Part shown: positions 6,278 through 64,000 of the stretch, piece after piece
Layout of the letters: the number at the start of each line of letters is the position of its first letter
Position numbering within the stretch: position 1 is the first letter of the stretch
Source of the DNA: Histomonas meleagridis 2922-C6/04-290x
Taxonomy: Eukaryota; Protista; Parabasalia
Direction of reading: 5' to 3'
Length of the DNA: 64,000 nt
Assembly: GCA_020184695.1 (NCBI GenBank)
Contig: JAANOX010000037.1
Location: 62,001 to 126,000, forward strand
The notes under the pieces: model-generated
What the model saw: the letters and a program-made list of their open reading frames with translations, nothing else
What the model was told of the DNA's origin: nothing
Database searches by the model: none
Made by a program: the position numbers and the translations under genes

Positions 6278-6559
6278 GGATGATGTTATAAATTAATTTA
6301 TCTGAAAGACGTAATTTTGTTATAAAGTAATAGATTGTATCTTCTACTGCTTCTCGAACTTCAGATGTTATAAGCGCTGGACTTTGTTCATTTGGTGTAT
6401 TAAGTACTAGCCAAAAGATTAATTTATGACTGCATCAGTTTTAAGTTCTTGTTTCTTTTTAAAAACACATGTCCCTCTAAAATTAATAAAAAAATCCGAT
6501 CTTCCTAAATCTTTAGTCTGAACAGGATGCTCCAGTAGAATTGAACTAATTCATTTTGT

Positions 6560-7150
6560 TCTTTTTGCATTGCTTTGTCAAGTAAATCACTAAATAATTG
6601 GATTGATCTAAAAATATTATTTGGAAACATAAATTCATGAAACTAAATATGAATATTATAAATAAGAATTCCTTCTTTGTCAAGTAATAATTTAATTATT
6701 TTTGAATGGCCTTTTTGAGCTCTCATGAGTGCCGTAAAAAATATTCTAAACAAATTCCAAATCTTATATTAAAATATCAAATTATTAAAATAAATTCTGA
6801 ACAAAACAAATAAATATCTTTAGCATTATTCCTTCTTGTTCTAGAAGTAAAAGAAATGTTTCTGTTTTACTTTTTTTTGATGCAAGTATACATACTGTTT
6901 AAAATGATTGAAATAATTTCAAAATGTTTTTTGAAATATGAAACGATTAAGATGAATATAACATAAAATATAAAAAGATTTTTACAATTGACATTAATTT
7001 CTTTGTGCTCACGAATTAATTTAAAGACTTTTGTTTTGCTATATTTAGATGCACTTAGGAATACTGTATTAAATATTTCACAATTATTATATTGAAATAT
7101 AAAATTATTGAAGCAAATTTTATCAATAATTTTTTCTTGAATTCGATATC
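6560..7150 (-). pseudogene. Degenerate split-ankyrin cassette array
   Basis: Minus-strand cassettes start at 7067 (TVFLSASKYSKTKVFKLIREHKEINVNCKN), 6898 (TVCILASKKSKTETFLLLLEQEGI, 7-nt deletion) and 6735 (TALMRAQKGHSKIIKLLLDKEGI). Spacers of 79 and 80 nt match the consensus. Confidence 0.7.
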
Positions 7151-7377
7151 TGCAGGATTCATACCTATGTTTTTTTGTTCAAAAAAAATAATTTTACATA
7201 TGTAGATAGATAATTTTTTTTTGACATTATCATATTTAATACTTAAAACATTTTACATTTTAAAGATACTATCATAATTAAATTTCGATATGGAAATTCA
7301 CATCCTAGAAATTTTCTAATGTCACTTTTGTTATTACACATAAAGGTGCAAAAAGATAAAAATATAACAAATCAAAA

Positions 7378-8562: not shown

Positions 8563-9500
8563 ATAATATTTGGAAAATATTTAATTTATTTGAAACAGCA
8601 CTTATTTATGCATCTAAAAAAGGTTATACAAAAATAGTTAAATTACTTCTTGAGCAAGAAGGAATTGATATTAATGCAAAAAATATTTATTTGTTTCATA
8701 TATTATTTATTTTAATAATTTGATATTTTAAAATAATATATGGATATTATTTATATAATTTAGAACAGCACTTATAATTGCAACTTTTTATCATCGCATA
8801 AAAATAATTGAAATGCTTCTTAATCAAAAAGAAATCGATTTAAATGTTAAAGATATTTCTTTACTTTATTGATTAAATAATTTGATTATTTGATGTTTAA
8901 AAATAATATTTCAAAATTATTTATATAATATAGGACTGCATTTATGTCTGCAATTCTAGAAGGTGATTGTGAATGTGTGCAATTATTTATCGAAAAAGAA
9001 GGAATTGATATTAATACCTTTGATAATTATTTTACTTATGTGAAATTTAATAAAATAATTTTATGATTTAAAATAATATTTGGAAATTGTTTATATTATT
9101 TAGAACACCACTTATGTTAGCATCTGAAAAAGGTAAAACTGAAATAATAAAATTACTTCTTAAACAAAATGTTATTAACATCAATTCTAAAAATATTTTT
9201 TTGTTTCATGTAATGTGTAATCAAATTGTTTGATGGTTCAAAATAATATATGGAAATTTTTTCAATTATTTAAAACAGCACTTATTATAGCGTCTGAAAA
9301 AGGCTTCCCTGAAATTGTTAAATTACTTCTGTTTCAAAAAGGAATTAATATAAATGTTATAGATATTTATTCATTTAATTCAATATATATTTTAATAATT
9401 TAATATTTCATTCTAATTTTTGGAAATTAATCAAATTATTTAAAACAGCTTATGCATATGCAACTCAAAAACGCAACATTAAAATTTGTTGCATACTATT
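8515..9500 (+). repeat. Split-ankyrin array C: six 80-nt spacers alternating with 90-nt ankyrin cassettes, exact 170-nt period
   Basis: Cassette Thr codons at 8595, 8765, 8935, 9105, 9275 and 9445. The five internal cassettes are stop-free. Confidence 0.95.
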
Positions 9501-9525
9501 TTTCTGTTTGCCAAAAGTTTTATAT

Positions 9526-9810
9526 CTAATGTTTTCTTGTATTTCTCTTTTTGTTGTTATTTTTTTGAGCTTTAGGTGGGTTTTTCTTGGCTTTTTTAGC
9601 TTGTGGAAGTTGTATACTAACACTCATGTTAGTGTCAATTCCACTTTGTTGAAGAAGTAAATTTATTATTTCAGTATTGCCTTTTTCAGTTGTTAAAATG
9701 AATGATGTTTTAAATGTTCCAAACAATTTCCGAATATTATTTTAGAATTTTTGATATTTTCAAATTGAATATTCTTTTTTGTTTTAAAAGTAATTTGAAA
9801 ATTTCAATTT
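9526..9810 (-). pseudogene. Orphan ankyrin cassette remnant, convergent with array C
   Basis: Minus strand: EIFKLLLKQK, a partial spacer ending TAATATTCGGAAATTGTTTGGAACATTTAA, then TSFILTTEKGNTEIINLLLQQSGIDTN (cassette 9619-9708). Confidence 0.65.
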
Positions 9811-17191: not shown

Positions 17192-20100
17192 TCATTTGTT
17201 TAGCTGAAGAGGAACTAAGTGAAGAAGACCTTTGCGAGTAAACACAAATAGGCAGTTCCATTCGTTCGAGTACGCAATGTACTCAACGTTTGAGCAAGAA
17301 GAGAAACTGATGTTTGACATTTCGAGGTAAAATGCCTCACAAATAAAAAGATTTGATTGATCATCGACAATTGCAATGTAATCAAATCCGTTGAAGCTTC
17401 TCCATGTACACCAATAAGAGATGTCAAAGGTAATTTGCTTTGATTTTATGATTTTTCCAGATGGACTAATAACAATTAATTTTGATCGAGTGTGAACAAC
17501 AGTGAAACCCCATGACTCTGTAATGAGTATCTTAATGGGCGTTTCTGAGATGTTGAGAATGAAGTGAAGATTCGATTTAAAATCAAATGATTGAATATAT
17601 CCTTCAACTGTACCACATGAAACAGTTTGAAAACGCTGACTTATTGCAAATGATGATACAGTATCATTAGTTATTAGAACTTTTCCTTTAAGTTTACTCG
17701 AACAAAAATCGAAAATTGAAATGTTTCCAATTTCATTTAAAATGCCAACCAATCGTCCCGAAAATTGAATGTTTTTAATTGTACCAAATTTGAATGACAA
17801 CTCCTTTGAAATCCTATCGGTTATTATTATCAAATTCTTATCGTCAAACAGCCCAAAACCGTTTTGTATAGTTCTCAAATTTGTGTTGTTCAATACGGTT
17901 TTTACGGTTATTTGATTTTTTTGTAAATTTTGTTTTTTATTCGAAACATCAATTTTTAAATCACAAAATGCATAATTTGATTTCATTGCAAGGAAAGTTA
18001 CTGTAGAATTTTCTAAGGTAATGTATGCTAAGCTAATAATCTCTTTATCGATATTTATAATTTGATTTGAATTAATTATTAAATTTTTGTTTTTGCTCTT
18101 TTTCGGATGTTTCGAAGTAAATATTTGCGTTGGCATTTGTCCGCATTTTTGGAGATTCTTTTTTATAGTTTCATTTGATATATCGAAATCATTCCAAACT
18201 GAATCGAACAAATTTTTGGAATATTTACTTTTAATGTTATTAACTCCGAACATTAAATCGATCCAATGATTTAAATTATCGGATATTTCATCAGATTCCA
18301 AAACTTTTCTGTTGAAATATACAAATTCATCCGAAGTCATTCTTCGATTTTTAATGTTTGGCAATTGCACATTATCGAAGAAATCCGAAGCGAAGAAGAA
18401 TTCCGGCGTTAGTTCATATGAATTATTATCTTTTATAGATTCTTTAAATGCATCTTCAATTGATTCCATTTTATTTCTATAGCCAAGTAAATCATAAGGA
18501 TAAATATGTGACAAATAATATGATATTATATATGGATTTGAAGGTCCATTTCTAAATTCACAATTAAAATTTAAATTAATAGGTTTCGTTAAATCACGTA
18601 TTGTATTATTCTCATAATCAGTTATCACCCATGGAAATATTGGATATAATGAACAATCATGAAATGTTCTTCCAGCAAATTGATTTAAAAACATAATGTA
18701 TTCAAAATTTGATAAACGGCCGCTTTGCCACTTTTGCGTAATTCCTGTTGATTCAATGTAACTTGAAAAAGTTTCTGTTTGAATTGGAATAGTCGTAAAC
18801 TTTTGAATTGCATGTACAACTTTGTTAATTTCTTTTTGATCAAAATCAATTAAAAAAGAATTACCTGTCGTCAGACAAAATTCAAAAGAATTAAATAAAT
18901 GAAATCGGTTTTTCTTGTAAACATTTGTAACTTCATTAAAATCGATAATTTTATGAAAATCAGAAGAAATTAAATGAATTGATTTATTATCAATCGAAAA
19001 TATAATATTCTTTGTGTTAGAAATTCGAACTTTTTTACATTTTATCGAAAACAAATGTTTATCATAATCGATCTTCATATTCAGATTCGAATTTTGTGGT
19101 ACACGAGAAGACATTTTATAAAATGGCTGAACAAAACCTGAACAATATTTAAATATTTTATGTTTTCTCTGTAAATTATTGTTATATTTCCACGGAGTTG
19201 TTTCATTCATTTGCTTTTGTATTAAATGATGAAACTTTCGATAATTTTGTAAATTGTTTTGAACATTTTCAATTTCTTCAAATTTAACATTTGTTTCATC
19301 GAAGAATATATTATTATTAAATCTTTTGATCAGTAAATCCCTAAAGTCTAATAATCGATAAGATAAATATTCGATATTATTTAAATATTTTGGAATTGCA
19401 TTTAATAAAAATTCATTAATTTCAATTGTCTTATTTTTAGTTGTTAAATATATTAAAATTTTTTGTAATTTTTCTATTTGTTTATCGTTAATTTCGCTAT
19501 TTAATAACATATTTATATAATTCGTGTCAATTAATTCTCCTTTTTGATTAGTTAATAATGAAAATGAATAACTTTGTATCATTTCATTATCTTTTATTAT
19601 ATTATATAAATCAGAAAAAAGTTTTATTTTAATTTTCGAATTATTTTTTATAATATTCGTTTTAAAAGGTGATTTTTCTATTAAAAATTTTAGTGATTTA
19701 GAAATATTTTCATTTATTAAATGTAATACTATAAATTTAAAACATCTCTTAAACATATTAATGTCATTTTTTTCTTCATAATATAAAAACAAAATTTTTT
19801 TGCCAATTTTTTCTACATTTGGAAAACCTAATGACGTTAACAGATCAACGATAGATATAAACTTATCAATTACAGTATAATTGAATGCTTTATCCATAAC
19901 GTTTTTTATAAATTTAATTACTAAATCGAAATAATCCTTTTTAAGATTAGTAATTAATATCAAAGGCCAAATTGACCAAATTTGATTTGTAACGCTTAAA
20001 TTTTTAGGTATATTTAATTCACTTAAAATTTTTGCGATTTCAATTTCTTTATTTAAATTTAATGCAATTAATATACACAAAGGATATATCAATTGATAAT

Positions 20101-23100
20101 TATAAACAATTTTAATACATTTATTCCATAATTTTATTGTAAAAAAATCTTCATTTAATAACGTTAATATTTTTTCCAAATGTAAATAAAAGTTTTTAAT
20201 ATCAATTTGATGAATTATTTTTAATGTAATTATAAAACGTTTTTCTTGTTTCGATTTAATTTGTTGATATAATAACTTACATAACATTGATTTATTATAT
20301 TTTATATTGTTAATAATTTCAAGTAGAAAACTTAGAAATGAATTAACACCTTTAATATCATTACAAGTTGTACATAATGACATTAAATAAATTAAATTTT
20401 CTTTGGTAAAACTTTGATTAATCAAAGCTTTTAATATATTATATAAATATTTTCTACAATTTTTTATATTTATATTTTTAGTACGTAATCTATTTGATGT
20501 ATTAAATCCTTTAATTATATCAACTTCGATAGGATCAAACCAAAGATATATTCGAATTAATGAAATAATTTCATTAAATTTCGGTAAATAACTTAAATAT
20601 AAAATATATAAATTAGTTCCCCAATCTTTGATAATTGATTCGAATGAATTCGATGTATACCATAAATCGAAGTTAAATAATATGTTATTAATTAAAGACT
20701 TACAAAACATTTCATTATTACTTGATGATAAAATCGAATAAAACTTTAAATATATTTGATATGTTAAGTTTTGTATATTATTTTCTATTAATATATATGA
20801 AATTAATGAAAAATATTTATAAATGTATTGATAAGAATTAGAAAAACATATTATGTAATATAAAAAGTCTAAAAATGTTTCATGAAAATTTTTCGGATAT
20901 TTATCAAAGTATATAAAAAATGGGATTAATAATTTCATTATCTTTTTCATGGAGAATATATCAAAGATATTTGAACGTAATGGATAACATTTGATTTGTT
21001 CCATTGTAATTTTTCCATTATTATTATTATGAACATCATATAATATTTCATCATTATTATATATCTTTAAGTAATTAACTTCGGAATAAAAATTACTTTG
21101 ATTATGTAAAGAGCCAAAAATTATTAATAAATTTTCGTTTTCTTTTTCATATGGATAAAAATCTATTGGAAATGTCGATGGATCTCCTTCATCATGACTT
21201 GTTTCAATTTTTATATATATTTCATTATTCATATTTTTTTTAATAGAAAATTTTAATGTTACGACATCAGAAGGGAAATTTTCATATAAAAATGTTTGTA
21301 ATATTTTTTGTACGAATTTAGTTTCTAATACAATTGATTTACCTTGTGAACATAAGTAAAAACCATTACATTTATTATTATATATTCCGAATATTATCGA
21401 TTTTGTATTAGTTATTTCTGAATGAATTTTTATATCGAATTTAAATGTTATACCTTTTTCTAATTGTAATATATTTATATTCTTTAAAGTTATTTCTTTA
21501 TTCCCTAATAATATAATTTTATAATATAATTTGGAGAAATTTATCAAAAAATTATTTAATATTTCAAACCAAAAATTTATTTCTTTTGTTGATATGACTT
21601 TAATTATATTTGAAATTATTTGTGGATCTGTTAAATATTGAGAAATCAAAACAATGTTTGGAATTACAATGTTTTTTATTACATTTTCATCAATTTTTAA
21701 ACTAAATTCATATCCATGAAATTTAAATGTATTATTATTATAATTTAATATAAGTTTTAATAAAAATAAGTCATATTCACCTTGATGACATTGAATACAA
21801 TTAAAAATCGAATAATTACATGATTTGTAAAACATTTTCAAATATTTTTTAGTGTTATTTTTATCGTTAATTATACTAAAAAATAATAATATTAAATTCG
21901 GTATCTTAATTAAAAACATTTGTTTCAAATATATTCGATTACGAGAAATAATATATAACAAATTATTAATTGTTTGTTCATTTGTATCAATGTTTTTAAT
22001 TGTTAAATATAAATTTAATGTTTGTGTTTTAGTTATATTAAAATTTTGATTATTTATTGATAAATTTTTAAAGAAATTTAAAGTTTTATCAAAAAATTCT
22101 TTAGAATTATATTTATTATTGGTTTGAATAATTGAAGGAATTAATTTTATACATTTTTCAGATAATTTCGGATTATAACATAATGAAATATTAATACATT
22201 TTAATAATTTTAATGGTAATTTATGATATTTCATATTAATTATTTTATGAATAAAATTAATTAACTTTTTTACCTTTGTTTCAGATTTATTTTGTAAATA
22301 TTTCTGTATATATGATATGATTTTATCTTCTAACGAAGGTTCAAATATTCTCAATAAAAAACATTTTAAAAATTCAAATGAACAAAAACATTCTTCAATT
22401 AATGTTTGATCTTCTAATAAAGTAAATAAATATATTAATATTATACTTTTAGCATTTTGAATTATTTGTTGTGAATTTTGAGTTTTTTTATAAAATAAAT
22501 CAAGAATAGTTAAAACATAATTTATGGAATTTAATGTCTTATCATTAATTAAAACATTTTTACCAAAGAAATTAAGTTTAATGGTGATATAACCAATGAT
22601 TTCAGAAAACAAAAATGGATTCTGTTTGTACTTTTGTAATAATCTATTCAAAAAGTTCGAGTTTTCAGTAATTATTATATCAATCGAATTTATCCGTAAA
22701 AAACGAATTATTTCGAAGTTTTCACATTTATTATATAATGTAATCTTATAGTTAAATATATTTTCAGATATTAAAATCTTAAAAATCGATTTATTATTAA
22801 TTTTATAGTTTAATTTCATTAAAAAATATTGGAAAATTAGATATAAAAATATGTTTTTTTCATTATTTTCATCTATAAAAACATTTAAGAAACCATCAAA
22901 AAATGAATTTATATATTCAGATAACGATTTCATTAATAAATTGGAAATGTTTTCAATTGATCCAATTTCATCCTCAATGAATTCAAATGTTAAATTCGTG
23001 TCAAACTCCGAATCGTTTAAAGGATTTAAACCATTTGGAAGTGTATCTTCTTCTTCAATTTTAAATATTATTTCAAATGATTCTTCTATCAAATTATTTT

Positions 23101-23902
23101 CTGAAATTTCAGAATTAACATTATTTGGATTAAATGAATATTTATTAATCAGTTTATCATTAAAACAAATACGTGATGATAATATTAATGGAATATTCGT
23201 ATAGAATATTGATAAAGATTGATCATATTTAATGGCGGACAATTCGGAAATCAATTGTATTGCATTGGTTTCAAATTTACAGCCTTTATTCGATATAACA
23301 TTGAAGATTTTAAGAAAATCGTATTGTTTATTTATATTTGATTGTTGAAAGATGAGTATAAAAAATTTAATGGTTATGTTATACGCTTTTGTTTGATCGT
23401 GAATGATCGAATTTTGAAGAATTTCAACCATATCATCAAATATTTTTGGAATTAAATCAGTTGGAAAACTTGAACTAAAAGAAAGATATTGAAGAGTAAG
23501 CTCCCTGATAAGAAATATGTATATAATATGAGGAATATTAGACTTAAATTTTAATATTGAATTTATTAGTAATGGATAATATTCTAAAATTGAAGTGACA
23601 TCTTTTGTGGATATCCATGCAATAGAATTCATGTAAGTTAAGAGTACTTCATCTTTAGTTGTTAAACCATATTGGTATAATGAAGAATTTAATTTAAATT
23701 TATTTGATATAGGCTGAAGCACTTGAGCAACCGATGCATTTCTTTCGATTTCAGTGTTTAATTTTTCAAAAAAACTTTCATTAACATCCGGAAATTTAAA
23801 ATATGATGAAACAGTATCAGATTTTTTGTGCTTAATTTGGATTTCTTGGCCCTTGAACTGAGAAAGGATAACCAAAAGAGGATCTTTTTTATCTTTCCTC
23901 AT
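17192..23902 (-). CDS. Beige/BEACH domain protein with PH-like and WD40-like C-terminus
   Basis: KWQSGRLSNFEYIMFLNQFAGRTF...YPIFPWV, ELTPEFF, HWIDLMFG, GQMPTQIF..HP; 2236 aa. Confidence 0.9.
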   Translation of the reverse strand: MRKDKKDPLLVILSQFKGQEIQIKHKKSDTVSSYFKFPDVNESFFEKLNTEIERNASVAQVLQPISNKFKLNSSLYQYGLTTKDEVLLTYMNSIAWISTKDVTSILEYYPLLINSILKFKSNIPHIIYIFLIRELTLQYLSFSSSFPTDLIPKIFDDMVEILQNSIIHDQTKAYNITIKFFILIFQQSNINKQYDFLKIFNVISNKGCKFETNAIQLISELSAIKYDQSLSIFYTNIPLILSSRICFNDKLINKYSFNPNNVNSEISENNLIEESFEIIFKIEEEDTLPNGLNPLNDSEFDTNLTFEFIEDEIGSIENISNLLMKSLSEYINSFFDGFLNVFIDENNEKNIFLYLIFQYFLMKLNYKINNKSIFKILISENIFNYKITLYNKCENFEIIRFLRINSIDIIITENSNFLNRLLQKYKQNPFLFSEIIGYITIKLNFFGKNVLINDKTLNSINYVLTILDLFYKKTQNSQQIIQNAKSIILIYLFTLLEDQTLIEECFCSFEFLKCFLLRIFEPSLEDKIISYIQKYLQNKSETKVKKLINFIHKIINMKYHKLPLKLLKCINISLCYNPKLSEKCIKLIPSIIQTNNKYNSKEFFDKTLNFFKNLSINNQNFNITKTQTLNLYLTIKNIDTNEQTINNLLYIISRNRIYLKQMFLIKIPNLILLFFSIINDKNNTKKYLKMFYKSCNYSIFNCIQCHQGEYDLFLLKLILNYNNNTFKFHGYEFSLKIDENVIKNIVIPNIVLISQYLTDPQIISNIIKVISTKEINFWFEILNNFLINFSKLYYKIILLGNKEITLKNINILQLEKGITFKFDIKIHSEITNTKSIIFGIYNNKCNGFYLCSQGKSIVLETKFVQKILQTFLYENFPSDVVTLKFSIKKNMNNEIYIKIETSHDEGDPSTFPIDFYPYEKENENLLIIFGSLHNQSNFYSEVNYLKIYNNDEILYDVHNNNNGKITMEQIKCYPLRSNIFDIFSMKKIMKLLIPFFIYFDKYPKNFHETFLDFLYYIICFSNSYQYIYKYFSLISYILIENNIQNLTYQIYLKFYSILSSSNNEMFCKSLINNILFNFDLWYTSNSFESIIKDWGTNLYILYLSYLPKFNEIISLIRIYLWFDPIEVDIIKGFNTSNRLRTKNINIKNCRKYLYNILKALINQSFTKENLIYLMSLCTTCNDIKGVNSFLSFLLEIINNIKYNKSMLCKLLYQQIKSKQEKRFIITLKIIHQIDIKNFYLHLEKILTLLNEDFFTIKLWNKCIKIVYNYQLIYPLCILIALNLNKEIEIAKILSELNIPKNLSVTNQIWSIWPLILITNLKKDYFDLVIKFIKNVMDKAFNYTVIDKFISIVDLLTSLGFPNVEKIGKKILFLYYEEKNDINMFKRCFKFIVLHLINENISKSLKFLIEKSPFKTNIIKNNSKIKIKLFSDLYNIIKDNEMIQSYSFSLLTNQKGELIDTNYINMLLNSEINDKQIEKLQKILIYLTTKNKTIEINEFLLNAIPKYLNNIEYLSYRLLDFRDLLIKRFNNNIFFDETNVKFEEIENVQNNLQNYRKFHHLIQKQMNETTPWKYNNNLQRKHKIFKYCSGFVQPFYKMSSRVPQNSNLNMKIDYDKHLFSIKCKKVRISNTKNIIFSIDNKSIHLISSDFHKIIDFNEVTNVYKKNRFHLFNSFEFCLTTGNSFLIDFDQKEINKVVHAIQKFTTIPIQTETFSSYIESTGITQKWQSGRLSNFEYIMFLNQFAGRTFHDCSLYPIFPWVITDYENNTIRDLTKPINLNFNCEFRNGPSNPYIISYYLSHIYPYDLLGYRNKMESIEDAFKESIKDNNSYELTPEFFFASDFFDNVQLPNIKNRRMTSDEFVYFNRKVLESDEISDNLNHWIDLMFGVNNIKSKYSKNLFDSVWNDFDISNETIKKNLQKCGQMPTQIFTSKHPKKSKNKNLIINSNQIINIDKEIISLAYITLENSTVTFLAMKSNYAFCDLKIDVSNKKQNLQKNQITVKTVLNNTNLRTIQNGFGLFDDKNLIIITDRISKELSFKFGTIKNIQFSGRLVGILNEIGNISIFDFCSSKLKGKVLITNDTVSSFAISQRFQTVSCGTVEGYIQSFDFKSNLHFILNISETPIKILITESWGFTVVHTRSKLIVISPSGKIIKSKQITFDISYWCTWRSFNGFDYIAIVDDQSNLFICEAFYLEMSNISFSSCSNVEYIAYSNEWNCLFVFTRKGLLHLVPLQLNK

Positions 23903-24197: not shown

Positions 24198-26630
24198 TTA
24201 AATATCTCGCAATCCTTCAGGGCGCCTACGTGTGGTTCTTGCTCTTCTTTTTCTGGTGTCAGGAATACCTTGGTATGTCGAAGGGATAATTGGTTTATCA
24301 GCGTTAGCGGTGGCATTGGAGGTAGTGGAGGTAGTCGGAGGTGGCCTGATTTGGTTAGGTTCGATTTTTTGGCTGAACCTGTTTTCTAAGAATGCTCGAT
24401 AATTTTCATTAATTTTAATTCTTCCAATTGGTTTTTCTATGTTGTTATTTTTGATTTCTTTCTTTGGTATTACTTCTTCTTTCTTTGGTATTACTTCTTC
24501 TTTCTTTGGTATGATTACTTCTTTCTTTGGTATGATTACTTCTTTCTTTGGTATTACTTCTTCTTTCTTTGGTATGATTACTTCTTTCTTTGGTATTACT
24601 TCTTCTTTCTTTGTTATGATTACTTCTTCTTTCTTTGGTATTACTTCTTTCTTTGTTATGATTACTTCTTCTTTCTTTGGTATGATTACTTCTTTCTTTG
24701 GTATGATTACTTCTTCTTTCTTTGGTATTACTTCTTCTTTCTTTGTTTGGATATCACCTGATGTGCTTTGTCTTGCTTTTTCCACCAAATCACCAATTTC
24801 CTCTTTAACTTCATTAAACATATTCTCTATTTGATATGAATACGTTTTGAATAAGTTTGGATCAGTGAGATATTTTTCAGCCTCGAACAGTACATCTGAT
24901 ACTTTTTCTTCTTCTTCAGACGAAATTGTACCATTAGCCTTACCCTTTTCCATAGCTTTTCTTGAATAATTACAATAATTTTGGAATGTTTCTTTTGCAC
25001 TAATCTTCCTATTAAATTCTCTATTATTATTAAACATATCTTCTTCTTTTTTATCCTTCTTTTGTTCATTTAATGAACTATTTAATGAAATAGTAATACC
25101 TTTAACATTACCCGAAGTTAAATCTTGAGCTGAAACATGCATAATACCATCTTCATCCACATCAAAATAAATTTTGATCTTTTGATTTACTCTCGGTGCT
25201 GGAGGTATGTTATTTAAATAAAATACACCAAGTAATTTGTTGTTAAATACTTTTTCACTTTCACCTTCATAAACTTTGATTGAAGCTTCTTTTTGATAAT
25301 CTTTTGAGGTAGAGAAATATCTAAATGCCGTTGTTGGTAAAACTGTATTCTTGGGTATAAATACAATCATTTTCCGACCTGTTGCTTCCACCCCTAATGG
25401 ATAAGGATTAACGTCTTCAAGTGTAAAGTTTTGAATTGATGGCGATGGATCTTTTTTAAGAACAGCAGCAATAAGTGAAGCACCAAATGCTATTGCTTCT
25501 TCTGGATCGATATCACAACAAATTTTCATGGATCCAAAATAGTCATTAAGCATTTCTTTGATATATGGAATTCTAGATGAGCCTCCAACAAGAACAACAT
25601 TATCTATCTTTGATTTTTTCAAATGTGCATCCTTTAAAACCTTTTTGACTGTCAATAATGTTGAGTCGAAAAGGTTTTTGTTGAGTTCATTAAATTTATC
25701 TCGATCAATAGGTTCGGTTATATAATTATTATTATTATCCAGACAATTAACAGTGGTACGGAACATTTGCGAAAGATTTATTTTTGCTTTTTCACATGCA
25801 TCTTTTAAAAAATGAAGTAAACGTTGTGATTTTCGTGGATCGAAATTATATTTCTTTTGAAAAATAGATGTTATGTAATTAATTAAATTATTATCAAAGT
25901 CTTGTCCACCAAGATGTGAATTTCCTGCTGTTGCAAGAACTCGAAAATGTGATCCATTAACAAGCAAAATTGATGCATCAAATGTTCCGCCACCAAGGTC
26001 AAAAACGAGAATATGTTTCTCGCCTTGGGGTTGAGTTTTATACGCATATGCTAGTGCCGCTGCTGTTGGTTCATTGATTATTCGGAGGACGTTTAAGCCT
26101 GCACATTTCGCAGCTTCTTTGGTTGCTTGTCTTTGGCTGTTATCAAAGTAAGCGGGAACTGTAATAACGGCGTCCGTAACAGTAGCCATAAGATTTTCTT
26201 CTGCAACCGATTTCATTTTCTCTAAAATAATCCCTGAAATTTCTTCTGGCAAATATAGCTTGGGTTGATTACCAAGTTGAATCTCTATCAGTGGCTGATT
26301 GTTGGTACCTTCAACAACTTTAAAAGGCCATGTTTTCTTATCGTTTTGAATTATTTCATCATTATATTTACGTCCTATCATACGTTTGGTATCATAAATA
26401 ACATTCCTAGGATTTTCTGCTAAACCAAATTTCGCTTCTTCACCAACAATTATTTCATCTTCTGTAAATGCCACCAGAGATGGTGTTGCCTTATTATCAA
26501 TTTGATTTTTCATAATTGTGCATTGATCATTATAAAAGACACCAACACAAGATCGTGTTGTTCCTAAATCAATCCCAATTGCACCTGTGAATTTGGGTTG
26601 ACGCTTCATAACAATGTTTAAAAATGCCAA
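24198..26630 (-). CDS. Hsp70/DnaK family protein with a repetitive C-terminal extension
   Basis: [56 protein letters not shown]. Confidence 0.93.
24460..24740 (-). repeat. Coding tandem repeat KKE(E)VI(I)P/T in the Hsp70 tail
   Basis: About 13 units of 18-24 nt (plus strand TTCTTTCTTTGGTATGATTAC and variants). Confidence 0.9.
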
Positions 26631-27035
26631 AAAAAGGTTACATCTTTTTTTTTTTTCCTTTTATTCCCCATTCTGATGGAGATAATAAGGGATAATCACA
26701 GATAAAAGCAGTACTGTACAAAGTAAACATATTATACTTGTTTAAAATTTATAATATCTTTCTTTTCCTTTTCGAAAAAATAATGAAGAACATTCGTTTT
26801 TTGTGGGAGAAAAAAAAAGTATCAAATCAAAAAGTGGATCAATCGCACTGTCATAATCTTTGTCAAAATACTTACCCTTCCTATTATTGACACTTTTCGT
26901 TGCCAGTCAACGACCGTTAAAATTTTGATATCCATGGATGAACGATCGTTCCCGGTTTTCCTGTGAAATTTTTTTGAATGTGTTCCTGTCACTTTTTTGT
27001 TATTGGGGTGTACGTTTAAATTCTCGTTAGATCAA

Positions 27036-28418
27036 ATGACTGAAGAACAAAAGAAACAATTCGCAAAAAAACAACCTGCTAAATGCAGAACAACAGATTT
27101 CTTTTGGCGTGGAGGAGATCCCCTTCGAGAACAAGAGTATTTGATCGAAGAATACAAAAAAGCTCTTGCTGAATTTCGACAAAGTGAAGCACAATTAAAA
27201 GCAGCTAAAAAAGATGTAAATGATGCGCAAGATGTGCTTAATGAACGAGAAGGTTATGCCATTGCCTTAGCTTCATATTTAGAACAAGACACCACATATT
27301 CCAGAAAAGAGAGAGAACTAAGAGCTGAACTATCAGATCTCGAATCTGAAATTGAAAAGAAAGATCGAGAACTTAGGGTTATCAAATCTATTCATAATCC
27401 AGCAACGTCAAGTGCACTTGTGAAAGAAAATGCAACATATATGATTGAAATTCAACGAGGCAATCAGACAATCGAAAATTACAGATCACAGCAAGATGAG
27501 TACAAAAGACAAATGGCAGCATGTACAGTTAATAATAGATATCGCCATGCTCTTGAACTCGAATATGAAAGAGATCGAACACAAAACAAGAAAATACATC
27601 TCCACAAAATTGTAAACAGCACAAAAAATGAGTTTGAAGAACAAAAAATAATTAAAATACTTCAAGATCCCGACTCAAGAATTGAAAGAAATGCACTTCA
27701 AAGACTTGTCCCTCTTGAAGTCGAGATAGCTCTTTTGGAAGAAAAGCTGAATCTTCATCCTACAAAACATGATAATTATTTATCATTATTAATCGATCAA
27801 ATTGAAGAACTTAACAGTAGAATGGAAGAGATTGGGTTAGGTGATGAAGTTGTTGCCACTGGGAAGATAAAAGAGAAAGTTTTTGGAGGGACCACAGATA
27901 GTGATGAATCATCTGAATATGCAAAATCAGACACAGAAAACAAAACAAATTCGTCTGGTGAAGAAAGGAAAGACAGCTCTAAATCAGATAAATCTCATTC
28001 AGACAGTGATAAAAGTAAATCACAAAATGAATCACATTCTGAAAACAATAAAACTGAATCGCATTCAGATAACAACAAAAGCTATTCTCAAACTGATAAA
28101 CGTCGAAATGAATCACATTCTGAATTTAGTAAAAATAAATCAAATTCAGATAATGATACACATTCGAACTATAGTAATAATAAATCGCACTCAGACAGTG
28201 CTAAAAGTGAATCTTTGAATGATAAACATCAAACTGAATCACATTCTGAATTTAGTAAAAATAAATCTGATTCAAGTAGCGAAAAAAGTGAATCGTCAAA
28301 TGATAAACATCAAAAGGATTCACATTCGGATTATAGTAATAATAAATCACATTCGGACAAAAGTGATTTCCAAAATGGAAAACAGAAAGAAAATTTTTCA
28401 GATGATTTTGATGAATAA
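27036..28418 (+). CDS. Hypothetical coiled-coil protein with a Ser/His/Lys/Asp-rich repetitive tail
   Basis: First ATG at 27036; heptad-like N-terminal two thirds; repeated ESHSEFSKNKS and SHSD motifs. Confidence 0.75.
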   Translation: MTEEQKKQFAKKQPAKCRTTDFFWRGGDPLREQEYLIEEYKKALAEFRQSEAQLKAAKKDVNDAQDVLNEREGYAIALASYLEQDTTYSRKERELRAELSDLESEIEKKDRELRVIKSIHNPATSSALVKENATYMIEIQRGNQTIENYRSQQDEYKRQMAACTVNNRYRHALELEYERDRTQNKKIHLHKIVNSTKNEFEEQKIIKILQDPDSRIERNALQRLVPLEVEIALLEEKLNLHPTKHDNYLSLLIDQIEELNSRMEEIGLGDEVVATGKIKEKVFGGTTDSDESSEYAKSDTENKTNSSGEERKDSSKSDKSHSDSDKSKSQNESHSENNKTESHSDNNKSYSQTDKRRNESHSEFSKNKSNSDNDTHSNYSNNKSHSDSAKSESLNDKHQTESHSEFSKNKSDSSSEKSESSNDKHQKDSHSDYSNNKSHSDKSDFQNGKQKENFSDDFDE

Positions 28419-28639: not shown

Positions 28640-28950
28640 AAGTATTTATAAATTGCATTTGGAATTTCTTCAAATGAGAAGTTTTGTCACTATTATGGGC
28701 ATCTTCAAATGGTCATACAGAAATAGTTAAATTACTTCTTGAACAAGAAAGAATCGATATTAATGCTAAAGATATTTAACTATTTTATTTTGTATTTATT
28801 TAAATAATTTGAATTTCCAATTTTTTTCCGAAAATTATTTATTTGATTTCAAACAGCACTTATGAATGTAACTTGGATCAACAATATATAAATAATAAAC
28901 TACTTTCGACTCGTAAAGATTTCAAAGATGATAATTTTATTGTTCATTTA
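28640..28950 (+). pseudogene. Orphan split-ankyrin remnant, convergent with array F
   Basis: Cassette 28684-28773 (LSLLWASSNGHTEIVKLLLEQERIDINAKD), 79-nt spacer, then a degenerate TALMNVTW cassette. Confidence 0.75.
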
Positions 28951-30473
28951 AGTAAATAACTTGTTTTAATATTAATTTCTTTATCAAAAAGTAATTTTAC
29001 TATTTCTATATTATTATTTTTAACTGCTATATGAAGTGCTGTTTCAAATTATTAATACATATTCCAAATTATTAAAACATATTCTAAATTATTAAAACAT
29101 ACATCAAATTATTAAAACATATTCTAAATTATTAAAACATATTACAAATTATTAAAACATACATCAAATTATTAAAACATATTCTAAATTATTCAAATGA
29201 ATAGTTTTTGCATTAACATCAATTCCTTCTTTCTCTAAAAGTAATTTTTACTATTTCTATATTATTATTTCTAACTGCTATATGAAGTGCTGTTTCAAAT
29301 TATTAAAACATATTAAAAATTATTAAAACATATTCTAAATTATTAAAACATATCCAAAATTATTAAAACATATTTCAAATTATTAAAACATATTCTAAAT
29401 TATTAAAACATATTTCAAATTATTAAAACATATTTCAAATTATTCAAATGAATAGTTTTTGCATTAACATCAATTCCTTCTTTCTCTAAAAGTAATTTTA
29501 CTATTTCTATATTATTATTTCTAACTGCTATATGAAGTGCTGTTTCAAATTATTAAAACATATTAAAAATTATTAAAACATATTCTAAATTATTAAAACA
29601 TATTACAAATTATTAAAACATACATCAAATTATTAAAACATATTCTAAATTATTAAAACATATTAAAAATTATTAAAACATATTTCAAATTATTAAAACA
29701 TATTTCAAATTATTAAAACATACATCAAATTATTAAAACATATTCTAAATTATTCAAATTAATAGTTTTTGCATTAACATCAATTCCTTCTTTCTCTAAA
29801 AGTAATTTTACTATTTCTATATTATTATTTCTAACTGCTATATGAAGTGCTGTTTCAAATTATTAAAACATATTAAAAATTATTAAAACATATTCTAAAT
29901 TATTAAAACATATTACAAATTATTAAAACATACATCAAATTATTAAAACATATTCTAAATTATTAAAACATATTTCAAATTATTAAAACATACATCAAAT
30001 TATTAAAACATATTCTAAATTATTAAAACATATTACAAATTATTAAAACATACATCAAATTATTAAAACATATTCTAAATTATTCAAATGAATAGTTTTT
30101 GCATTAACATCAATTCCTTCTTTCTCTAAAAGTAATTTTACTATTTCTATATTATTATTTCTAACTGCTATATGAAGTGCTGTTTCAAATTATTAAAACA
30201 TATTAAAAATTATTAAAACATATTCTAAATTATTAAAACATATCCAAAATTATTAAAACATATTTCAAATTATTAAAACATATTCTAAATTATTAAAACA
30301 TATTACAAATTATTAAAATGAATATATTTTGCATTAACATCAATTCCTTCTTTCTCTAAAAGTAATTTTACTATTTTTATATTATTATTTTTAACTGCTA
30401 TATGAAGTGCTGTTTCAAATTATTAATACATATTCCAAATTATTAAAACATATTCTAAATTATTCAAATGAAT
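28944..30473 (-). repeat. Split-ankyrin array F: near-identical cassettes separated by expanded 20-nt minisatellite spacers
   Basis: Spacers of 60, 140, 240, 220, 160 and 160 nt built from AATAATTT(AGA/GGA/GTA/GAT/GAA/TTA)..ATGTTTT 20-mers. Cassettes read TALHIAV(K/R)NNNIEIVKLLLEKEGIDVNAKT; the last ends with TGA at 28944-28946. Confidence 0.95.
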
Positions 30474-31583
30474 AGTTTTTGCGTTAATATCAATTCCTTT
30501 ATCTAAAAGTAATTTTACTATTTCAATATTTCCTGATTCAACCGAGCGCAATAAAATTGTATTTGGAATTTGTTGATTTTCTATGATACTATCCATTAGA
30601 AATGTATTTCCATTTCTTGCAATTTCCTCTATAATATCTTCAGTTATTTCCTTTGTTTCTTGTTCTAAAAATGAAAAAATTATATAATTATTATAATTCA
30701 GACATATTTTTTTAAAATATGCAATGTCTTTTTCAGATTTACCATGATTTATATTAGGTGATTGTTTATTGGATTTTGTTATAACTTCTCCTTTTTTCTT
30801 TTCATAAAGATATTTAAAGATATCATTTTTATGAAATTCAATTGCTGTTTCATATGCATCTTCAAATGATGAATGATTCTGTTCACATAAATGAATTATC
30901 TCTAAACTTCCACCTGCAACTGCATATTTACCTGCGTTATCTATTTTAGAACCATTCATAAGTAAATATTTAAAACATTTAACAGAAGAAAAAAATGCTG
31001 CATAATCAATTAATTTAACATTTTCTTGATTAATAAATGAACATCTTTCATAAATTGATGGCTCAATGATTTGATTAAAGTCAAAATTTGGTTGTGATGA
31101 TATTTCTTGAAGTTTTTCTATTTCATCATTTCGAATTATTTTTGCTATTTCATTCGGATTATGCCCTTCTTCATTAAAATTCTTCAGGTTAGCAAAATCA
31201 TTATTTAGAACCAATTCACAATTTTTCTTATTGTATTTTGCAGGATCTGTTTCGAATAATCCTTGTTCGTCCATCTTTCGAAGAAGGAAAAATGATTCTT
31301 GTGTTGTTGTTTGCAGTAAGTATAGATTAAATATATGAACTAGGTTTGTTGTATTTTTATTAGTTTTTTCTTCTTCTAAATTTAACATCAATAAGTATTT
31401 AAAAATTGGGAATTTGACGTTTAATTGAGAAGCAAATGCTGTATATATGAACCCAGAAATAAGAAGATTGAATGTGTATTGTCTATTGTAAGTAAATAAT
31501 TCTATTGTTGATTGAACTGATGATTCGATATTTTCTTCGTTGAGATTAAAGATGATTGACTGCAACGATTTAGAGAGCTCCAT
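30423..31583 (-). CDS. DUF3447-type ankyrin-repeat protein, first coding block of split locus F
   Basis: Same family motifs as 7378..8562; ends at TAA TAA inside the first 60-nt spacer. Confidence 0.85.
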   Translation of the reverse strand: MELSKSLQSIIFNLNEENIESSVQSTIELFTYNRQYTFNLLISGFIYTAFASQLNVKFPIFKYLLMLNLEEEKTNKNTTNLVHIFNLYLLQTTTQESFFLLRKMDEQGLFETDPAKYNKKNCELVLNNDFANLKNFNEEGHNPNEIAKIIRNDEIEKLQEISSQPNFDFNQIIEPSIYERCSFINQENVKLIDYAAFFSSVKCFKYLLMNGSKIDNAGKYAVAGGSLEIIHLCEQNHSSFEDAYETAIEFHKNDIFKYLYEKKKGEVITKSNKQSPNINHGKSEKDIAYFKKICLNYNNYIIFSFLEQETKEITEDIIEEIARNGNTFLMDSIIENQQIPNTILLRSVESGNIEIVKLLLDKGIDINAKTIHLNNLEYVLIIWNMY

Positions 31584-31964: not shown

Positions 31965-32037
31965 GCTTCTGTAGCCCAGTGGTTAGAGCGTTCGCCTAGT
32001 AAGCGGAAGATCGCGAGTTCGACTCTCGCCAGAAGCA
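31965..32037 (+). tRNA. tRNA-Thr (anticodon AGT), intronless
   Basis: Acceptor stem GCTTCTG/CAGAAGC, D arm with TGG, anticodon arm TTCGC-CTAGTAA-GCGGA, T arm GCGAG-TTCGACT-CTCGC; followed by a T-run (Pol III terminator). Confidence 0.96.
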
Positions 32038-42113: not shown

Positions 42114-43346
42114 ATGAATAAAGGTTCAAAAGTAAGGCCATATGAAAGGATTAATCAGCCTGACAGCTTAAATCAAGATTATGGTAAATCACAACATGTT
42201 GAAAATAAAAATGTTCAGCCGATTCGGCAAAAAGCAGAATTGAGAAGAGAAAATCTTGATATTTCACCAATTCATACTGTTTTCCTTCGTAACCTAGACT
42301 CAAAGTTAAGTACACAAAAACTCAAAGAGATAGCTTCTGAATTTGGAGAAGTATTTTTAACTTTTAGCCGTGTTAATCAAAAAGGAATAGCTTTTATTAC
42401 TTTTTATGATTCTCGTGATGCTAAAAAAGCTGTTGATGGACTTGAGGGTCGCAATATTCAAAACCGAGAAATCCACACTTCATTTGCATATTCATCACCT
42501 GATGCAAATTTCGACCCTACTCAAACATGTTCTACGATAACTGTTAAGATTTCACCCGGAGAACAAACTGTTACCAAAGATGAGGTCCAAGAGGCATTTT
42601 CGAAATTTGGTGAAATTAGCGATTTTATTGAAAAAAGCGAAAATGAGTTTGTTGTCAAGTATTATGATCTTCGAGCGGCCAAGAAAGCTGTTGAAGAATC
42701 TGGTACTGTTGAGATTCATGATATCAAAACTGAAGTTGTATTTAATCTTGAAGATGATGACGACCAAAAGAGTCGTCCTACAGAAACTGAACGTGAACGC
42801 GACGAACGTCGAAGAGCCGAACGTTCTCGTAACAACAGACGAAAAGAAGATCGATATCGAAATGATAATTCTAAAGGAAGAAGAGATGACAACTACGAAC
42901 AAAACTATCAAAACTACCAAGGCCCATATCCGGGGCAACCATATCCATACCCATATCCATATTCATATATGAATCCAGGATTTATATATATGGGTTATCC
43001 TCCACAACCATATGGTATGGCGTACCCTTATCCACCACAACAGTACCCCCCTGTGAATCAAGAGTACTACCAACAGCAGTATATGCAACAACAACCGCCT
43101 CAACAACAGTACCAACAACCGCCGCCACAACCTCCACAACCGCAACCGCCGCAACAACAACCGCAACCGCTTCAACCGCAACAGAACGATCAGACTCAAC
43201 AACAACAAACTATAACAAAGCCTGAAGCAACAGAAAAGAAATCACCATTTAACCCTCCAGATACACAACAAGGTAATGCAGATGGCGATAGTGCAGAAAA
43301 GCCAGACATCAGAGGATTACTCCAAAAAATGTTTGGTAGTGAGTGA
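42114..43346 (+). CDS. RNA-binding protein with two RRMs and a P/Q/Y-rich low-complexity tail
   Basis: TVFLRNL, KGIAFITFYDSRDAKKA, FVVKYYDLRAAKKA. Confidence 0.88.
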   Translation: MNKGSKVRPYERINQPDSLNQDYGKSQHVENKNVQPIRQKAELRRENLDISPIHTVFLRNLDSKLSTQKLKEIASEFGEVFLTFSRVNQKGIAFITFYDSRDAKKAVDGLEGRNIQNREIHTSFAYSSPDANFDPTQTCSTITVKISPGEQTVTKDEVQEAFSKFGEISDFIEKSENEFVVKYYDLRAAKKAVEESGTVEIHDIKTEVVFNLEDDDDQKSRPTETERERDERRRAERSRNNRRKEDRYRNDNSKGRRDDNYEQNYQNYQGPYPGQPYPYPYPYSYMNPGFIYMGYPPQPYGMAYPYPPQQYPPVNQEYYQQQYMQQQPPQQQYQQPPPQPPQPQPPQQQPQPLQPQQNDQTQQQQTITKPEATEKKSPFNPPDTQQGNADGDSAEKPDIRGLLQKMFGSE

Positions 43347-49145: not shown

Positions 49146-49451
49146 TTATTGTAGAATTTAAATAAAAACAAAGCGTTAAATAAATTTTTATTAAATTTTG
49201 TTATCAGGGAGATACCTAAAACTAATAAAGTGATAATGCATTTAGAAGATTGTGAGATTTGTTCGGAATTGTTCTGGCAAACTCGAATTTAAATCATAAT
49301 TGAATAAATTTATACGATGTATACACATGAAGTGTATTTCTACCAAATTTATCTTTTCTTATTCCTAATGATGTGTGAAATGACCATTTATGTATTCAAA
49401 ACCATAAACGTGCGCCTTTTATTTGGAAGAAAAAAAATTCTATCGAACCAC

Positions 49452-50717
49452 ATGAATACACTTACCACACTCCAAAATTTAATATTCGATTTAACCGAGG
49501 AAAGTCTTGAGTCTTCCACTCAACAAATAATAAAATTATTTGACGTAAATTACCCCTATTCATTTAATTTTGTTTTAAGCAGGTTAATTTATAGTGCATT
49601 TTGTTCACACGTAAAAAAATGTGATGATAATGTATATATAAATTTTATTGAATTAATGCAACAAAAGGAAAAAGAAATTATTAAAAATAATTTTCAAATA
49701 ATTGAAATTTGTTGTAATGTTTTAATCAAATTTAATTCTCAAGAATCATATTATTTTATAGAAAAAATTATTGAGAAGAATTTAGTTGATACCAGCATTA
49801 CAAGAAATATTAATAGTTTATATTTTTCACATTATAAAACAGATAAAGAAAACCAAAAAATTATTCATAAAATTACTCAAAAATATAATAGTTTTAATTT
49901 GGTTCAAAAATACTTTTTGGATAATTATGAAAAATTATCAAAGAATGATTTTAAACTTCATAAGCAATTAATTAAAGAAGGAGTTAATCCAAATGAAATT
50001 GCTAAGATAATTCGAAATGATGAAATAGAAAAACTTCAAGAAATATCATCACAAACAAATTTTGATTTTAATCAAACAATTGAACCATCACTTTATGAAA
50101 GATGTTCATTTATTAATGAAGAAAATGTTACATTAATTGATTATGCAGCATTTTTTTCTTCTGTTAAATGTTTTAAATATTTACTTATGAATAATACAAA
50201 TGTAGTTAATACAGGCAAATATGCAATTGCAGGTGGAAATGAAGAAATTATTCATTTATGTGAACAAAATCATTCAACATTTAAAGATGCATATGAAGCA
50301 GCAATAGAATTTCATCGAAATGATATCTTTAAATATCTTTATGAAAACAATATAGAAGAAATTGATAATAAAAAAATCAATTACCTAAGGATAATATGCA
50401 TAGAATATAACAATTATGAACTCTTAACATTTTTAGACAAATGGGATACATGTATTTCTAATTATGTTATCAACAATGCTGCAAAGACAGGTAATTTAAT
50501 GCTTGTTAATTTTTATCTTCAAAATAATCAAATTCTCAATGATATTTTGGTAATCTCCTCGAAATCTGGAAATAGAGAACTTGTTAAGTATTTTCTCGAA
50601 CAAGGAATTGATGTTAATAGTAAAGATTTTTATTTGTTTTATTTGATATTTCTTTTAATAATTTTTAATTTCAAAATAACATTTGGAAATCATTTTGAAT
50701 ATTTTATACATCACTAA
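49452..50717 (+). CDS. DUF3447-type ankyrin-repeat protein, first coding block of split locus H
   Basis: Family motifs as above; likely start MNTLTTLQN at 49452 (ORF track starts 49317); runs through the first spacer and stops out of frame in cassette 1. Confidence 0.85.
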   Translation: MNTLTTLQNLIFDLTEESLESSTQQIIKLFDVNYPYSFNFVLSRLIYSAFCSHVKKCDDNVYINFIELMQQKEKEIIKNNFQIIEICCNVLIKFNSQESYYFIEKIIEKNLVDTSITRNINSLYFSHYKTDKENQKIIHKITQKYNSFNLVQKYFLDNYEKLSKNDFKLHKQLIKEGVNPNEIAKIIRNDEIEKLQEISSQTNFDFNQTIEPSLYERCSFINEENVTLIDYAAFFSSVKCFKYLLMNNTNVVNTGKYAIAGGNEEIIHLCEQNHSTFKDAYEAAIEFHRNDIFKYLYENNIEEIDNKKINYLRIICIEYNNYELLTFLDKWDTCISNYVINNAAKTGNLMLVNFYLQNNQILNDILVISSKSGNRELVKYFLEQGIDVNSKDFYLFYLIFLLIIFNFKITFGNHFEYFIHH

Positions 50718-62516: not shown

Positions 62517-62700
62517 AGTGCTCAAATTATTAATTTCGATTTTTTTATTTCGCAATTGTATTTGCTCCATACAAAGAAATGTATTTCAACGCAAATTTAG
62601 CTGAAAGAATTCGATTTTATTTGCTTTAAAGGAGAAAACTTTTGTTGTAAATGAAATGTAAATATTGAATGATTTACGTCGGTATTCAATTTATTTCTTC

Positions 62701-63985: not shown

Positions 63986-64000
63986 GCAAATTATTAGAAA

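Follow-up and report, generated by a model that had tools for sequence, protein, structure and literature searches.

The 64,000-nt window of the Histomonas meleagridis genome analysed here (contig JAANOX010000037.1 of assembly GCA_020184695.1, positions 62,001 to 126,000 of the forward strand) contains genes of a DUF3447-ankyrin family in which the open reading frame (ORF) gives way to an array of short ankyrin cassettes separated by T-rich spacers; the array from which the study started belongs to a gene at 28944-31583 on the minus strand, referred to as the focal locus. Each spacer is found to be composed of k consecutive units, every unit consisting of a 17-nt element, (A/G)TTT...ATTT, and one codon. 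We understand the spacers as chains of a 17-nt T-rich element plus a sense codon, with the codons supplying the hairpin linker of the ankyrin repeat and the elements being excised as ultrashort intron-like pieces, and in its entirety we hold this reading to be rather likely, if well short of certain. Dozens of tiny, non-standard intron-like pieces would probably be removed to make these proteins.

Spacer anatomy and the coding signature of the slot codons

H. meleagridis is a poultry parasite that belongs to the Tritrichomonadida, an order of parabasalids. The GC content is 28.7% in the published genome (PMC8529796) and about 28% in the window. Four DUF3447/ankyrin genes are present in the window, with mechanical ORFs at 30423-31583 (minus strand; focal locus), 7378-8562 (locus C), 49317-50717 (locus H) and 62906-63985 (locus I). 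All four give Pfam matches to Ank and DUF3447, homologues of the family are present in H. meleagridis and Tritrichomonas, and the ankyrin framework T-x-L-H...G...V-K-L-L-L...G-x-D-x-N by which the family is recognized appears in the translations of the cassettes. Each ORF runs into a stop a few codons past an ankyrin repeat end of the type ...(I/V)(D/N)xNxK(D/N/T), and beyond it 90-nt cassettes (30 amino acids, T-A-L-...-N-A-K-D) alternate with T-rich spacers that hold stops in all frames.

The clue to the anatomy of the spacers was provided by L004, the gene of P0019 in another H. meleagridis assembly, in every spacer of which GG stands invariantly at positions -23/-22 from the Thr codon, with the third base free (GGA, GGT, GGC). 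In the fifteen 80-nt spacers of loci C and H, the triplets at positions 18-20, 38-40, 58-60 and 78-80 read xxGx, and none of the 60 triplets is a stop. Six further 80-nt spacers from outside the window (L002, L003, three in the metagenomic relative L006, and spacer S4 of L008, the gene of P0018) decode RAGY, HDGS, HFGN, HEGR, YDGK and SLGV. Slot 3 is thus Gly in 20 of the 21 spacers of this length, written as GGA or GGT, and the slots are free of stops. The motif x-x-G-x is the β-hairpin linker that joins ...N-A-K-D to T-A-L-H... in ankyrin repeats, precisely the part missing from the 30-residue cassettes. A position-specific scoring matrix derived from 29 uninterrupted four-residue ankyrin linkers of homologues gave a score of +3.33 when the spacers were read in the 17 + 3 phase, and negative scores in all of the 19 other phases (best, -0.37). 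Conservation within the spacer is highest at slot 3 and lowest at slots 1, 2 and 4, a pattern that matches the ankyrin consensus.

Other divisions of the spacer were considered and rejected. Fixed retained ends of 9+3, 6+6, 4+8 or 1+11 nt encounter TAA in several copies (ATT TAA at starts, TAA TTT NNN at ends). A 12-nt micro-exon (ATATTTGGAAAT, I-F-G-N) followed by a constant 17 nt explains the GG at -23/-22, but two of the 15 copies in the window and two of the nine in L004 would still contain stops; the 17 + 3 division took its place because it removes all of these stops.

Spacer lengths, counted between the D-position codon and the Thr codon, had been described in the initial annotation as quantized in steps of 20 nt, and all 24 spacers of the window outside the decayed arrays are indeed multiples of 20, which is far beyond chance. 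They comprise the focal spacers of 60, 140, 240, 220, 160 and 160 nt, each of which divides exactly as 9 + 20n + 11, as well as the six of locus C (all 80 nt), the ten of locus H (nine of 80 nt, one of 60 nt), one of 40 nt at 6142-6181, and one at 63920-63999 that measures 80 nt provided the A at 64000 starts a Thr codon. At the focal locus the regularity is trivial, as its spacers repeat one 20-mer in tandem almost without change (Tandem Repeats Finder, TRF: period 20, 61.7 copies). At loci C and H it is non-trivial, because their fifteen 80-nt spacers differ pairwise by about 29% and yet show zero indels. Decayed arrays depart from the rule, with periods of 170, 162 and 152 nt at 6480-7260 (minus strand) and a 79-nt spacer at 28774-28852.

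As a general rule, however, the quantization does not survive comparison with intact loci of the same genome. The spacers of L004 measure 46, 67, 47, 64, 49, 63, 65, 66 and 66 nt, those of L008 69, 82, 46 and 80 nt, and L006 has one spacer of 86 nt that corresponds to two extra codons plus 80 nt. In L004 and L008, GTTT is the usual start of the elements and 17 nt their usual length, with five elements of 18 nt and two of 19 nt; ahead of the first element stand ordinary, purine-rich codons that occupy 3-9 nt, in every case a multiple of 3. The spacers of these two paralogues read NR-G-W, FA-G-R, G-K-G-W, DED-G-T, K-N-G-W, FS-D-G-R, EE-E-D-S, NM-G-S, D-L-G-E and S-L-G-V, with element lengths distributed, for example, as NR[17]G[17]W, FA[18]G[17]R, G[17]K[18]G[17]W, DED[17]G[17]T, FS[17]D[17]G[17]R and NM[17]G[17]S. 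The Gly codon is GGA, GGT or GGC, and is kept at about 32% protein identity as well as in Tritrichomonas foetus. Quantization in steps of 20 nt is hence a property of arrays in which all elements are 17 nt and extra codons are absent, not of the machinery. The original view that copy number is free and phase is fixed holds insofar as copy number varies while the 20-nt phase is kept; as a general requirement of processing it has to be given up. Phase matters because 20 equals 17 + 3. For the same reason, the internal 20-mers are poorly described as decoy or alternative landing sites, each being a complete 17-nt element with one sense codon; the recurring ATTTG core is the ATTT at the 3′ end of the element together with the first base of the next codon, and at the final AATAATTTGAA-ACA boundary the last unit simply meets the Thr codon.

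The lengths and the slot pattern also bear on programmed ribosomal frameshifting through the spacer. The sequence is T-rich and slippery-looking, and the downstream frame stays open through the last 60 nt of the consensus 80-nt spacer. But 8 of the 21 spacers of 80 nt offer no open path by a single shift, a stop stands in frame in the 60-nt spacer of locus H, and spacer lengths fall in all three frame classes, so that the earlier argument against a fixed +1 or -1 shift stands and frameshifting, already contradicted by the sequence, retains hardly any probability.

Judged from the sequence, four points count as established: that the spacers are built as 17 + 3, that the slot codons carry a coding signature, that the cassettes are under selection, as detailed below, and that the 20-nt rule has exceptions.

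Cassette selection, proposed element removal and competing explanations

The 14 diverged cassettes of loci C and H lie 6-27 bases from the consensus, and all are open. When random substitutions were simulated neutrally to match this divergence, a given cassette had a 0.59 chance of gaining a stop, and 0 of 5000 runs kept all 14 open. The cassettes vary mostly at the surface positions usual for the ankyrin fold. In loci C, H and the focal locus, as in L004, L006 and L008, the array closes with a final cassette that leads into a unique tail and a stop codon; in the decayed arrays, cassette frame and element length are both lost. By these sequence features the cassettes are coding and under selection. 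With coding cassettes and arrays that have proper ends, it follows that the spacers must be left out of the protein.

The same evidence bears on the view of the arrays as a pure minisatellite in dead DNA, according to which the proteins end at the first stop in spacer 1, the downstream arrays are untranslated relics or 3′ untranslated region, and slippage occurs by whole units. At the focal locus the spacers have indeed the properties of a minisatellite, with near-perfect tandem 20-mers in 3, 7, 12, 11, 8 and 8 units (TRF period 20), and one focal cassette is frameshifted. Furthermore, many paralogue ORFs end ...AKDI*, the TAA being the second spacer codon; the annotation stops in the first spacer; and decayed arrays do occur in the window. 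However, dead DNA leaves unexplained the open state of 14 diverged cassettes (not reproduced in any of the 5000 neutral runs), the spelling of the hairpin by slot codons in one phase only, the retention of the Gly codon in paralogues of about 32% identity and in T. foetus, the unique tails with stops at which arrays end, and the freedom from indels of fifteen 80-nt spacers that are 29% different. We therefore consider this account improbable.

Returning to the chains of elements and sense codons, we infer that the elements may be removed, that removal may take place at the level of RNA, and that the arrays may expand by duplication of units. For the protein to be made, all elements of 17-19 nt would have to be left out of the message, most likely by RNA-level excision, the elements lying in phase 0 and having 5′ (G/A)TTT and 3′ (A)TTT borders rather than GT-AG, and single-codon micro-exons would persist between them. 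Arrays would grow or shrink by tandem duplication or loss of whole units of element plus codon, such that each 20-nt unit would bring the gain or loss of one loop residue with the elements intact; other length changes would break an element or the frame and be selected out, which would yield the 20-nt quantum. The focal locus would represent a young, runaway expansion of one unit. The repetition of GAT (cassette ...GAT, slot 1 GAT, slot 2 GAT) fits with growth by unit duplication. At locus C one predicted junction is ...GATATTAATGCAAAAAAT + ATT GAT GGA AGA + ACAGCACTTATA..., and an example of the junction peptide expected under the 17 + 3 model is DINAKDDDGETALMIASIEGDK.

Excision of an intron-like kind is favoured because many elements have a 5′ GTTT(W)TT that resembles the trichomonad 5′ motif, because the element lengths are narrow yet not fixed (17-19 nt), and because at one junction of L003 the place of the elements is taken by precisely four codons (VMFE), as would be expected after intron loss. 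The relatives argue in the same direction. In T. foetus (L005:4510-4650, MLAK01000993.1) the arrangement is ACT, a 21-nt GT element, GGA, a GT element of about 108 nt, and GAG, and in L011, a relative from a Logan assembly, spacers of 24-230 nt occupy the matching position; a Gly codon isolated between elements of such different length favours intron-like excision over a skip of fixed length. The longer cases in T. foetus and L011 have the form G-TTTT...A-G with one G shared, and can be read as GT...NA or TT...AG, never as a full GT...AG. T. foetus TRFO_08250 and the next ankyrin ORF of 400 amino acids, which are annotated apart, look like one gene split by two elements.

These observations are equally relevant for translational bypassing, in which the elements would stay in the mRNA and the ribosome would hop over each gap of 17-19 nt. 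The narrow element length in H. meleagridis, the lack of AG at the element 3′ end and the position of the elements in phase 0 between codons would all suit a hopping ribosome. Hopping between matching codons was tried as an explanation and no matching codons were found: the codons flanking the elements differ (e.g., GAT...GGA...GAA), leaving no take-off/landing pair. Moreover, elements begin with ATT or GTT, so that the take-off codon is not followed by a stop, and RNAalifold applied to 21 aligned spacers with their flanks returned 0 pairs and 0 kcal/mol, hence no conserved stem-loop or other conserved RNA structure. Between 20 and 50 hops would be needed per protein, and the lengths of about 108 nt in T. 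foetus and 24-230 nt in L011 are in the range typical of introns. Taken together, these points render bypassing very unlikely. The RNAalifold result also means that the end-to-end conserved pairing of euglenid-type or BHB-type introns is not seen here.

The 17-mer consensus is (A/G)TTT(A)TTT...ATTT. Among 87 elements of the 80-nt class, 42 start with AT, 18 with AA, 10 with GT and 9 with TT; in the paralogues L004 and L008, GT starts are the majority. Canonical U2-type introns, with an AG end and an in-frame product, are not recognizable, existing GT...AG pairs leaving a frameshift. The short (type B) introns of trichomonads have 5′ GTWYWD and a fused branch/3′ motif TCTAAC-H(1-2)-AACAG at a length of 23-28 nt (PMC12316389), of which the present elements of 17-19 nt have the 5′ motif alone, and this in GT-type elements only. 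U12-type AT-AC introns (5′ ATATCCTT, 3′ AC, branch site TCCTTAAC) were rejected in view of the consensus ATTT(A/T)TTT...ATTT.

A single intron per spacer is a further alternative. The whole spacer, or all but a few end bases, would be removed at once, and the 20-nt periodicity would reflect repeated splice signals or decoy acceptors, much as the initial annotation had it. The first and the later 17-mers have (A/G)TTT...ATTT in common, the last focal unit together with ACAG resembles a short GT...AACAG intron, and the VMFE junction of L003 resembles joined spacer ends. Nevertheless, no GT-AG pair gives an in-frame product (the GT...AG pair in spacer S3 of L004 leaves 7 nt), the ACAG and GT dinucleotides that had hinted at splice boundaries yield no GT-AG introns in frame, and many spacers are without any GT. 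Fixed boundaries of 9+3, 6+6 or 1+11 run into stops in several copies. The invariant Gly codon would be discarded, leaving its third-base wobble and the slot pattern unexplained. The probability that we assign to this alternative is low.

Several findings weigh against the excision of chained elements as we propose it. To our knowledge, chains of 3-nt exons between 17-nt introns are without precedent, and literature searches retrieved no description of such an architecture. The element 3′ ends are TT in 60 of 87 cases and AG in none, and most elements of the window begin with AT or AA, not with GT. The parabasalid branch/3′ motif is absent from the arrays, CTAACNNNYAG occurring once in the window, at chance level. 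A search for elements of 16-20 nt joining long ORFs returned no isolated 17-nt element in other genes of the window. Certain slot codons are unfit, namely TAA in the last slot of spacer S6 of L004 and CAA in place of Gly at 8912-8914; Gly is missing from 4 of the 6 focal spacers and from locus I, and one focal cassette (29203-29293) has a 1-nt frameshift. Protein searches with the focal protein and P0019 did not find a spliced product, in databases whose coverage of H. meleagridis RNA is uncertain. The published annotation, produced with AUGUSTUS trained on the transcriptome and predicting at most one intron per gene, terminates the family genes inside the first spacer (PMC8529796).

In its widest form, the proposal would be that Histomonas, and probably other Tritrichomonadida, precisely excise from nuclear mRNA elements of 17-19 nt that are not GT-AG and can be chained with single-codon exons, by a strongly derived spliceosome or a non-spliceosomal pathway. 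One loop of a protein would then be specified one codon at a time, each 20-nt unit gained or lost altering its length by a residue. We put this forward tentatively, considering that it may well not hold in such breadth. Further relatives were not found in JGI metagenomes by DNA pattern and protein profile searches.

The focal locus and other features of the window

The upstream exon of the focal gene (30474-31583, minus strand, as are all features of this locus) encodes a DUF3447-type N-terminal domain and a first ankyrin repeat ending ...DINAKT, as delineated from Pfam, the ORF list and homologues; the mechanical ORF extends from it into spacer 1 and stops there. Spacer 1 (30414-30473, 60 nt) has 3 units with the codons AGA GGA GAA, that is, R-G-E. 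Spacer 2 (30184-30323, 140 nt) has 7 units decoding V-R-E-W-R-L-E, spacer 3 (29854-30093, 240 nt) 12 units decoding RDVRDERDVRLE, and spacer 4 (29544-29763, 220 nt) 11 units decoding RDEELRDVRLE. Spacers 5 (29294-29453) and 6 (29043-29202), both of 160 nt and 8 units, decode EEREWRLE and RDVRDRGE. Four 90-nt ankyrin cassettes found as nhmmer matches (30324-30413, 30094-30183, 29764-29853 and 29454-29543) alternate with spacers 2-4, and the focal 90-nt cassettes all encode TALHIAV(K/R)NNNI(K/E)IVKLLLEKEGIDVNAK(Y/T). The fifth cassette has 91 nt, with an extra A in an A-run (GTAAAAATTAC versus GTAAAATTAC) that breaks the frame and is either a real frameshift or a homopolymer error of the assembly. 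The locus closes at 28944-29042 with the last cassette, unique tail and stop, TALHIAVKNNNIEIVKLLFDKEINIKTSYLLK*.

The first 17 nt of each focal spacer are ATTCATTTGAATAATTT, and later units consist of ATATGTTTTAATAATTT (34 copies) or GTATGTTTTAATAATTT (7 copies) and a triplet, one identical 17-mer making up 34 of the 49 focal elements. The 20-mer is variable only in its codon, which is AGA, GAA, GAT, GTA, TTA, GGA or TGG and in no case a stop. The near-identity of focal cassettes and elements points to a recent expansion. With Gly lost in four linkers and one cassette frameshifted, the focal gene may be degenerating.

Locus C (8425-9660, plus strand) is the 3′ part of gene 7378-8562 and has seven cassettes, the last cassette, tail and stop ending at 9660. 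Its six 80-nt spacers decode IYGE, IDGR and IDQR (8515-8594, 8685-8764, 8855-8934) and EYGR, NDGK and NNGK (9025-9104, 9195-9274, 9365-9444). Locus H (50538-52304, plus strand), the 3′ part of gene 49317-50717, has eleven cassettes and ends ...TALIYATQKGFTEIIKLIHLKKKKINEC*. Its spacers span 50628-52217; those of 80 nt decode DLGY, DDGE, AFGL, DDGD, DFGD, INGE, DNGC, DDGR and KDGN, and the one of 60 nt (51308-51367) decodes SRF.

Locus A (6108-6260, plus strand) is a shortened second copy of the focal gene's 3′ end; its 40-nt spacer has 2 units with GAA GAA. The surrounding region, 6050-6330 (plus strand), shows a cassette end, the two-unit spacer and a last cassette with a similar tail, has no gene body upstream, and appears to be a segmental duplicate fragment. 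Locus I (63827-64000, plus strand) is the end of gene 62906-63985 and is cut by the window edge; its first spacer has 4 units with CAT CAT AAA GAA. The N-terminal part of the same gene lies upstream in another frame (62600-62960, plus strand; ...NLIYFAFVSRINPSDIY / ...TYISYLELIQTKEEE), the shift coinciding with an ATATATA run near 62941-62950 that looks like a 2-nt slip. A candidate element near 62940 was rejected in favour of this slip in the (AT) run, and the shift reflects either a pseudogene or an error of the assembly rather than an element of 17 nt.

The decayed array at 6480-7260 has cassettes with stops and indels, and it is how such arrays look without constraint. A second remnant (28684-28906, plus strand), convergent with the end of the focal gene, consists of one cassette, the 79-nt spacer, with a 16-nt element and GAA in slot 3, and another cassette that is broken.

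Mobile elements were noticed near relatives of these genes outside the window. A mariner/Tc1-like transposase ORF lies inside the ankyrin tail of the P0014 gene (L009:4767-5900; H. meleagridis WSYJ01000186.1), with cassettes resuming downstream, and in two parabasalid-like ENA metagenome contigs from two samples a DDE_Tnp_IS1595-type transposase gene (L006:4380-5279, L007:4622-5521) is located about 2.3 kb downstream of the ankyrin gene.

The remainder of the window includes typical eukaryotic genes in single ORFs (actin, HSP70, RPL3, Nuf2, ADA2 and an AAA ATPase); the Nuf2 protein has a 100% identical copy on WSYJ01000081.1 of the H. meleagridis assembly GCA_020186115.1. The ORF at 24198-26630 (minus strand) encodes an 810-residue protein of the HSP70 family, in the C-terminal part of which a 21-nt tandem repeat of 13.5 copies (24456-24745) forms an in-frame repeat of 7 residues. 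Tandem repeats with periods of 27, 45 and 81 nt occur at 28022-28359 (plus strand) within ORF 26997-28418, which has no Pfam match, and a CAACAACCGCCG repeat is located at 43088-43170 (plus strand) in the RRM protein 42114-43346. An uninterrupted ORF of 2236 amino acids (17192-23902, minus strand) lies where the window is richest in AT (17-23% GC), and an ORF at 4029-5063 (plus strand) weakly matches the HTH domain of P-element transposase (THAP-like), just under the Pfam cut-off. The sole Rfam match of the window is a tRNA-Thr(AGT) at 31965-32037 (plus strand), between the focal gene and a HEAT/kinase gene.

Significance and comparison with known systems

Parabasalids are intron-poor eukaryotes, and removal of the elements, if confirmed, would constitute a new intron variant in a lineage thought to be nearly free of introns. 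If the 17-nt elements leave the mRNA, they would number 20 to 50 per gene and be among the shortest introns known, without AG and with one-codon exons in between, and so would bear directly on the minimal requirements of splice-site recognition. A repeat protein would have in these units a simple way to vary its loop length, one residue per 20 nt, and a whole gene family of a veterinary pathogen would have been mis-annotated as truncated proteins.

Ultrashort introns of 15-16 nt are known from Stentor coeruleus and of 18-21 nt from the nucleomorph of Bigelowiella natans. The elements described here are like ultrashort spliceosomal introns in being very short and T-rich, in having a narrow length range, and in their defined phase within coding sequence; they are unlike them in having neither 3′ AG nor a CTAAC-type branch, in mostly starting with AT or AA, and in being chained one codon apart. 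Trichomonads are reported to carry no more than one or two introns per gene, and in Trichomonas vaginalis the 63 validated introns are all GT-AG with a rigid motif, the shortest having 23 nt and the type B introns 23-25 nt (PMC12316389). The 5′ GTTT(W)TT of many H. meleagridis elements fits the GTWYWD of trichomonad introns. Like the micro-exons of 3-27 nt in animals and plants, the one-codon exons are predicted to be included in the mRNA; whereas those micro-exons are isolated between long canonical introns, up to 12 consecutive single-codon exons would follow one another here at a spacing of 20 nt.

With translational bypass elements, as in T4 gene 60 and the byps of Magnusiomyces capitatus mitochondria, the present elements have in common that short non-coding gaps interrupt an ORF, many per gene, without a splice consensus; they differ in lacking matching take-off and landing codons, a stop after take-off and a hairpin, and in belonging to nuclear genes. 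The non-conventional introns of euglenids have their ends paired in a stable stem and lengths that are not near-constant (PMC3935182, PMC12501133). There the likeness consists in borders other than GT-AG and a removal mechanism that is unknown or derived, and the difference in the conserved pairing, which was not found here. Finally, the tandem 20-nt unit of the focal locus, present in 3 to 12 copies in neighbouring spacers, recalls the coding minisatellites, from which it is set apart by a unit length that is not a multiple of 3 and that could be coding only if 17 of its 20 bases were removed.

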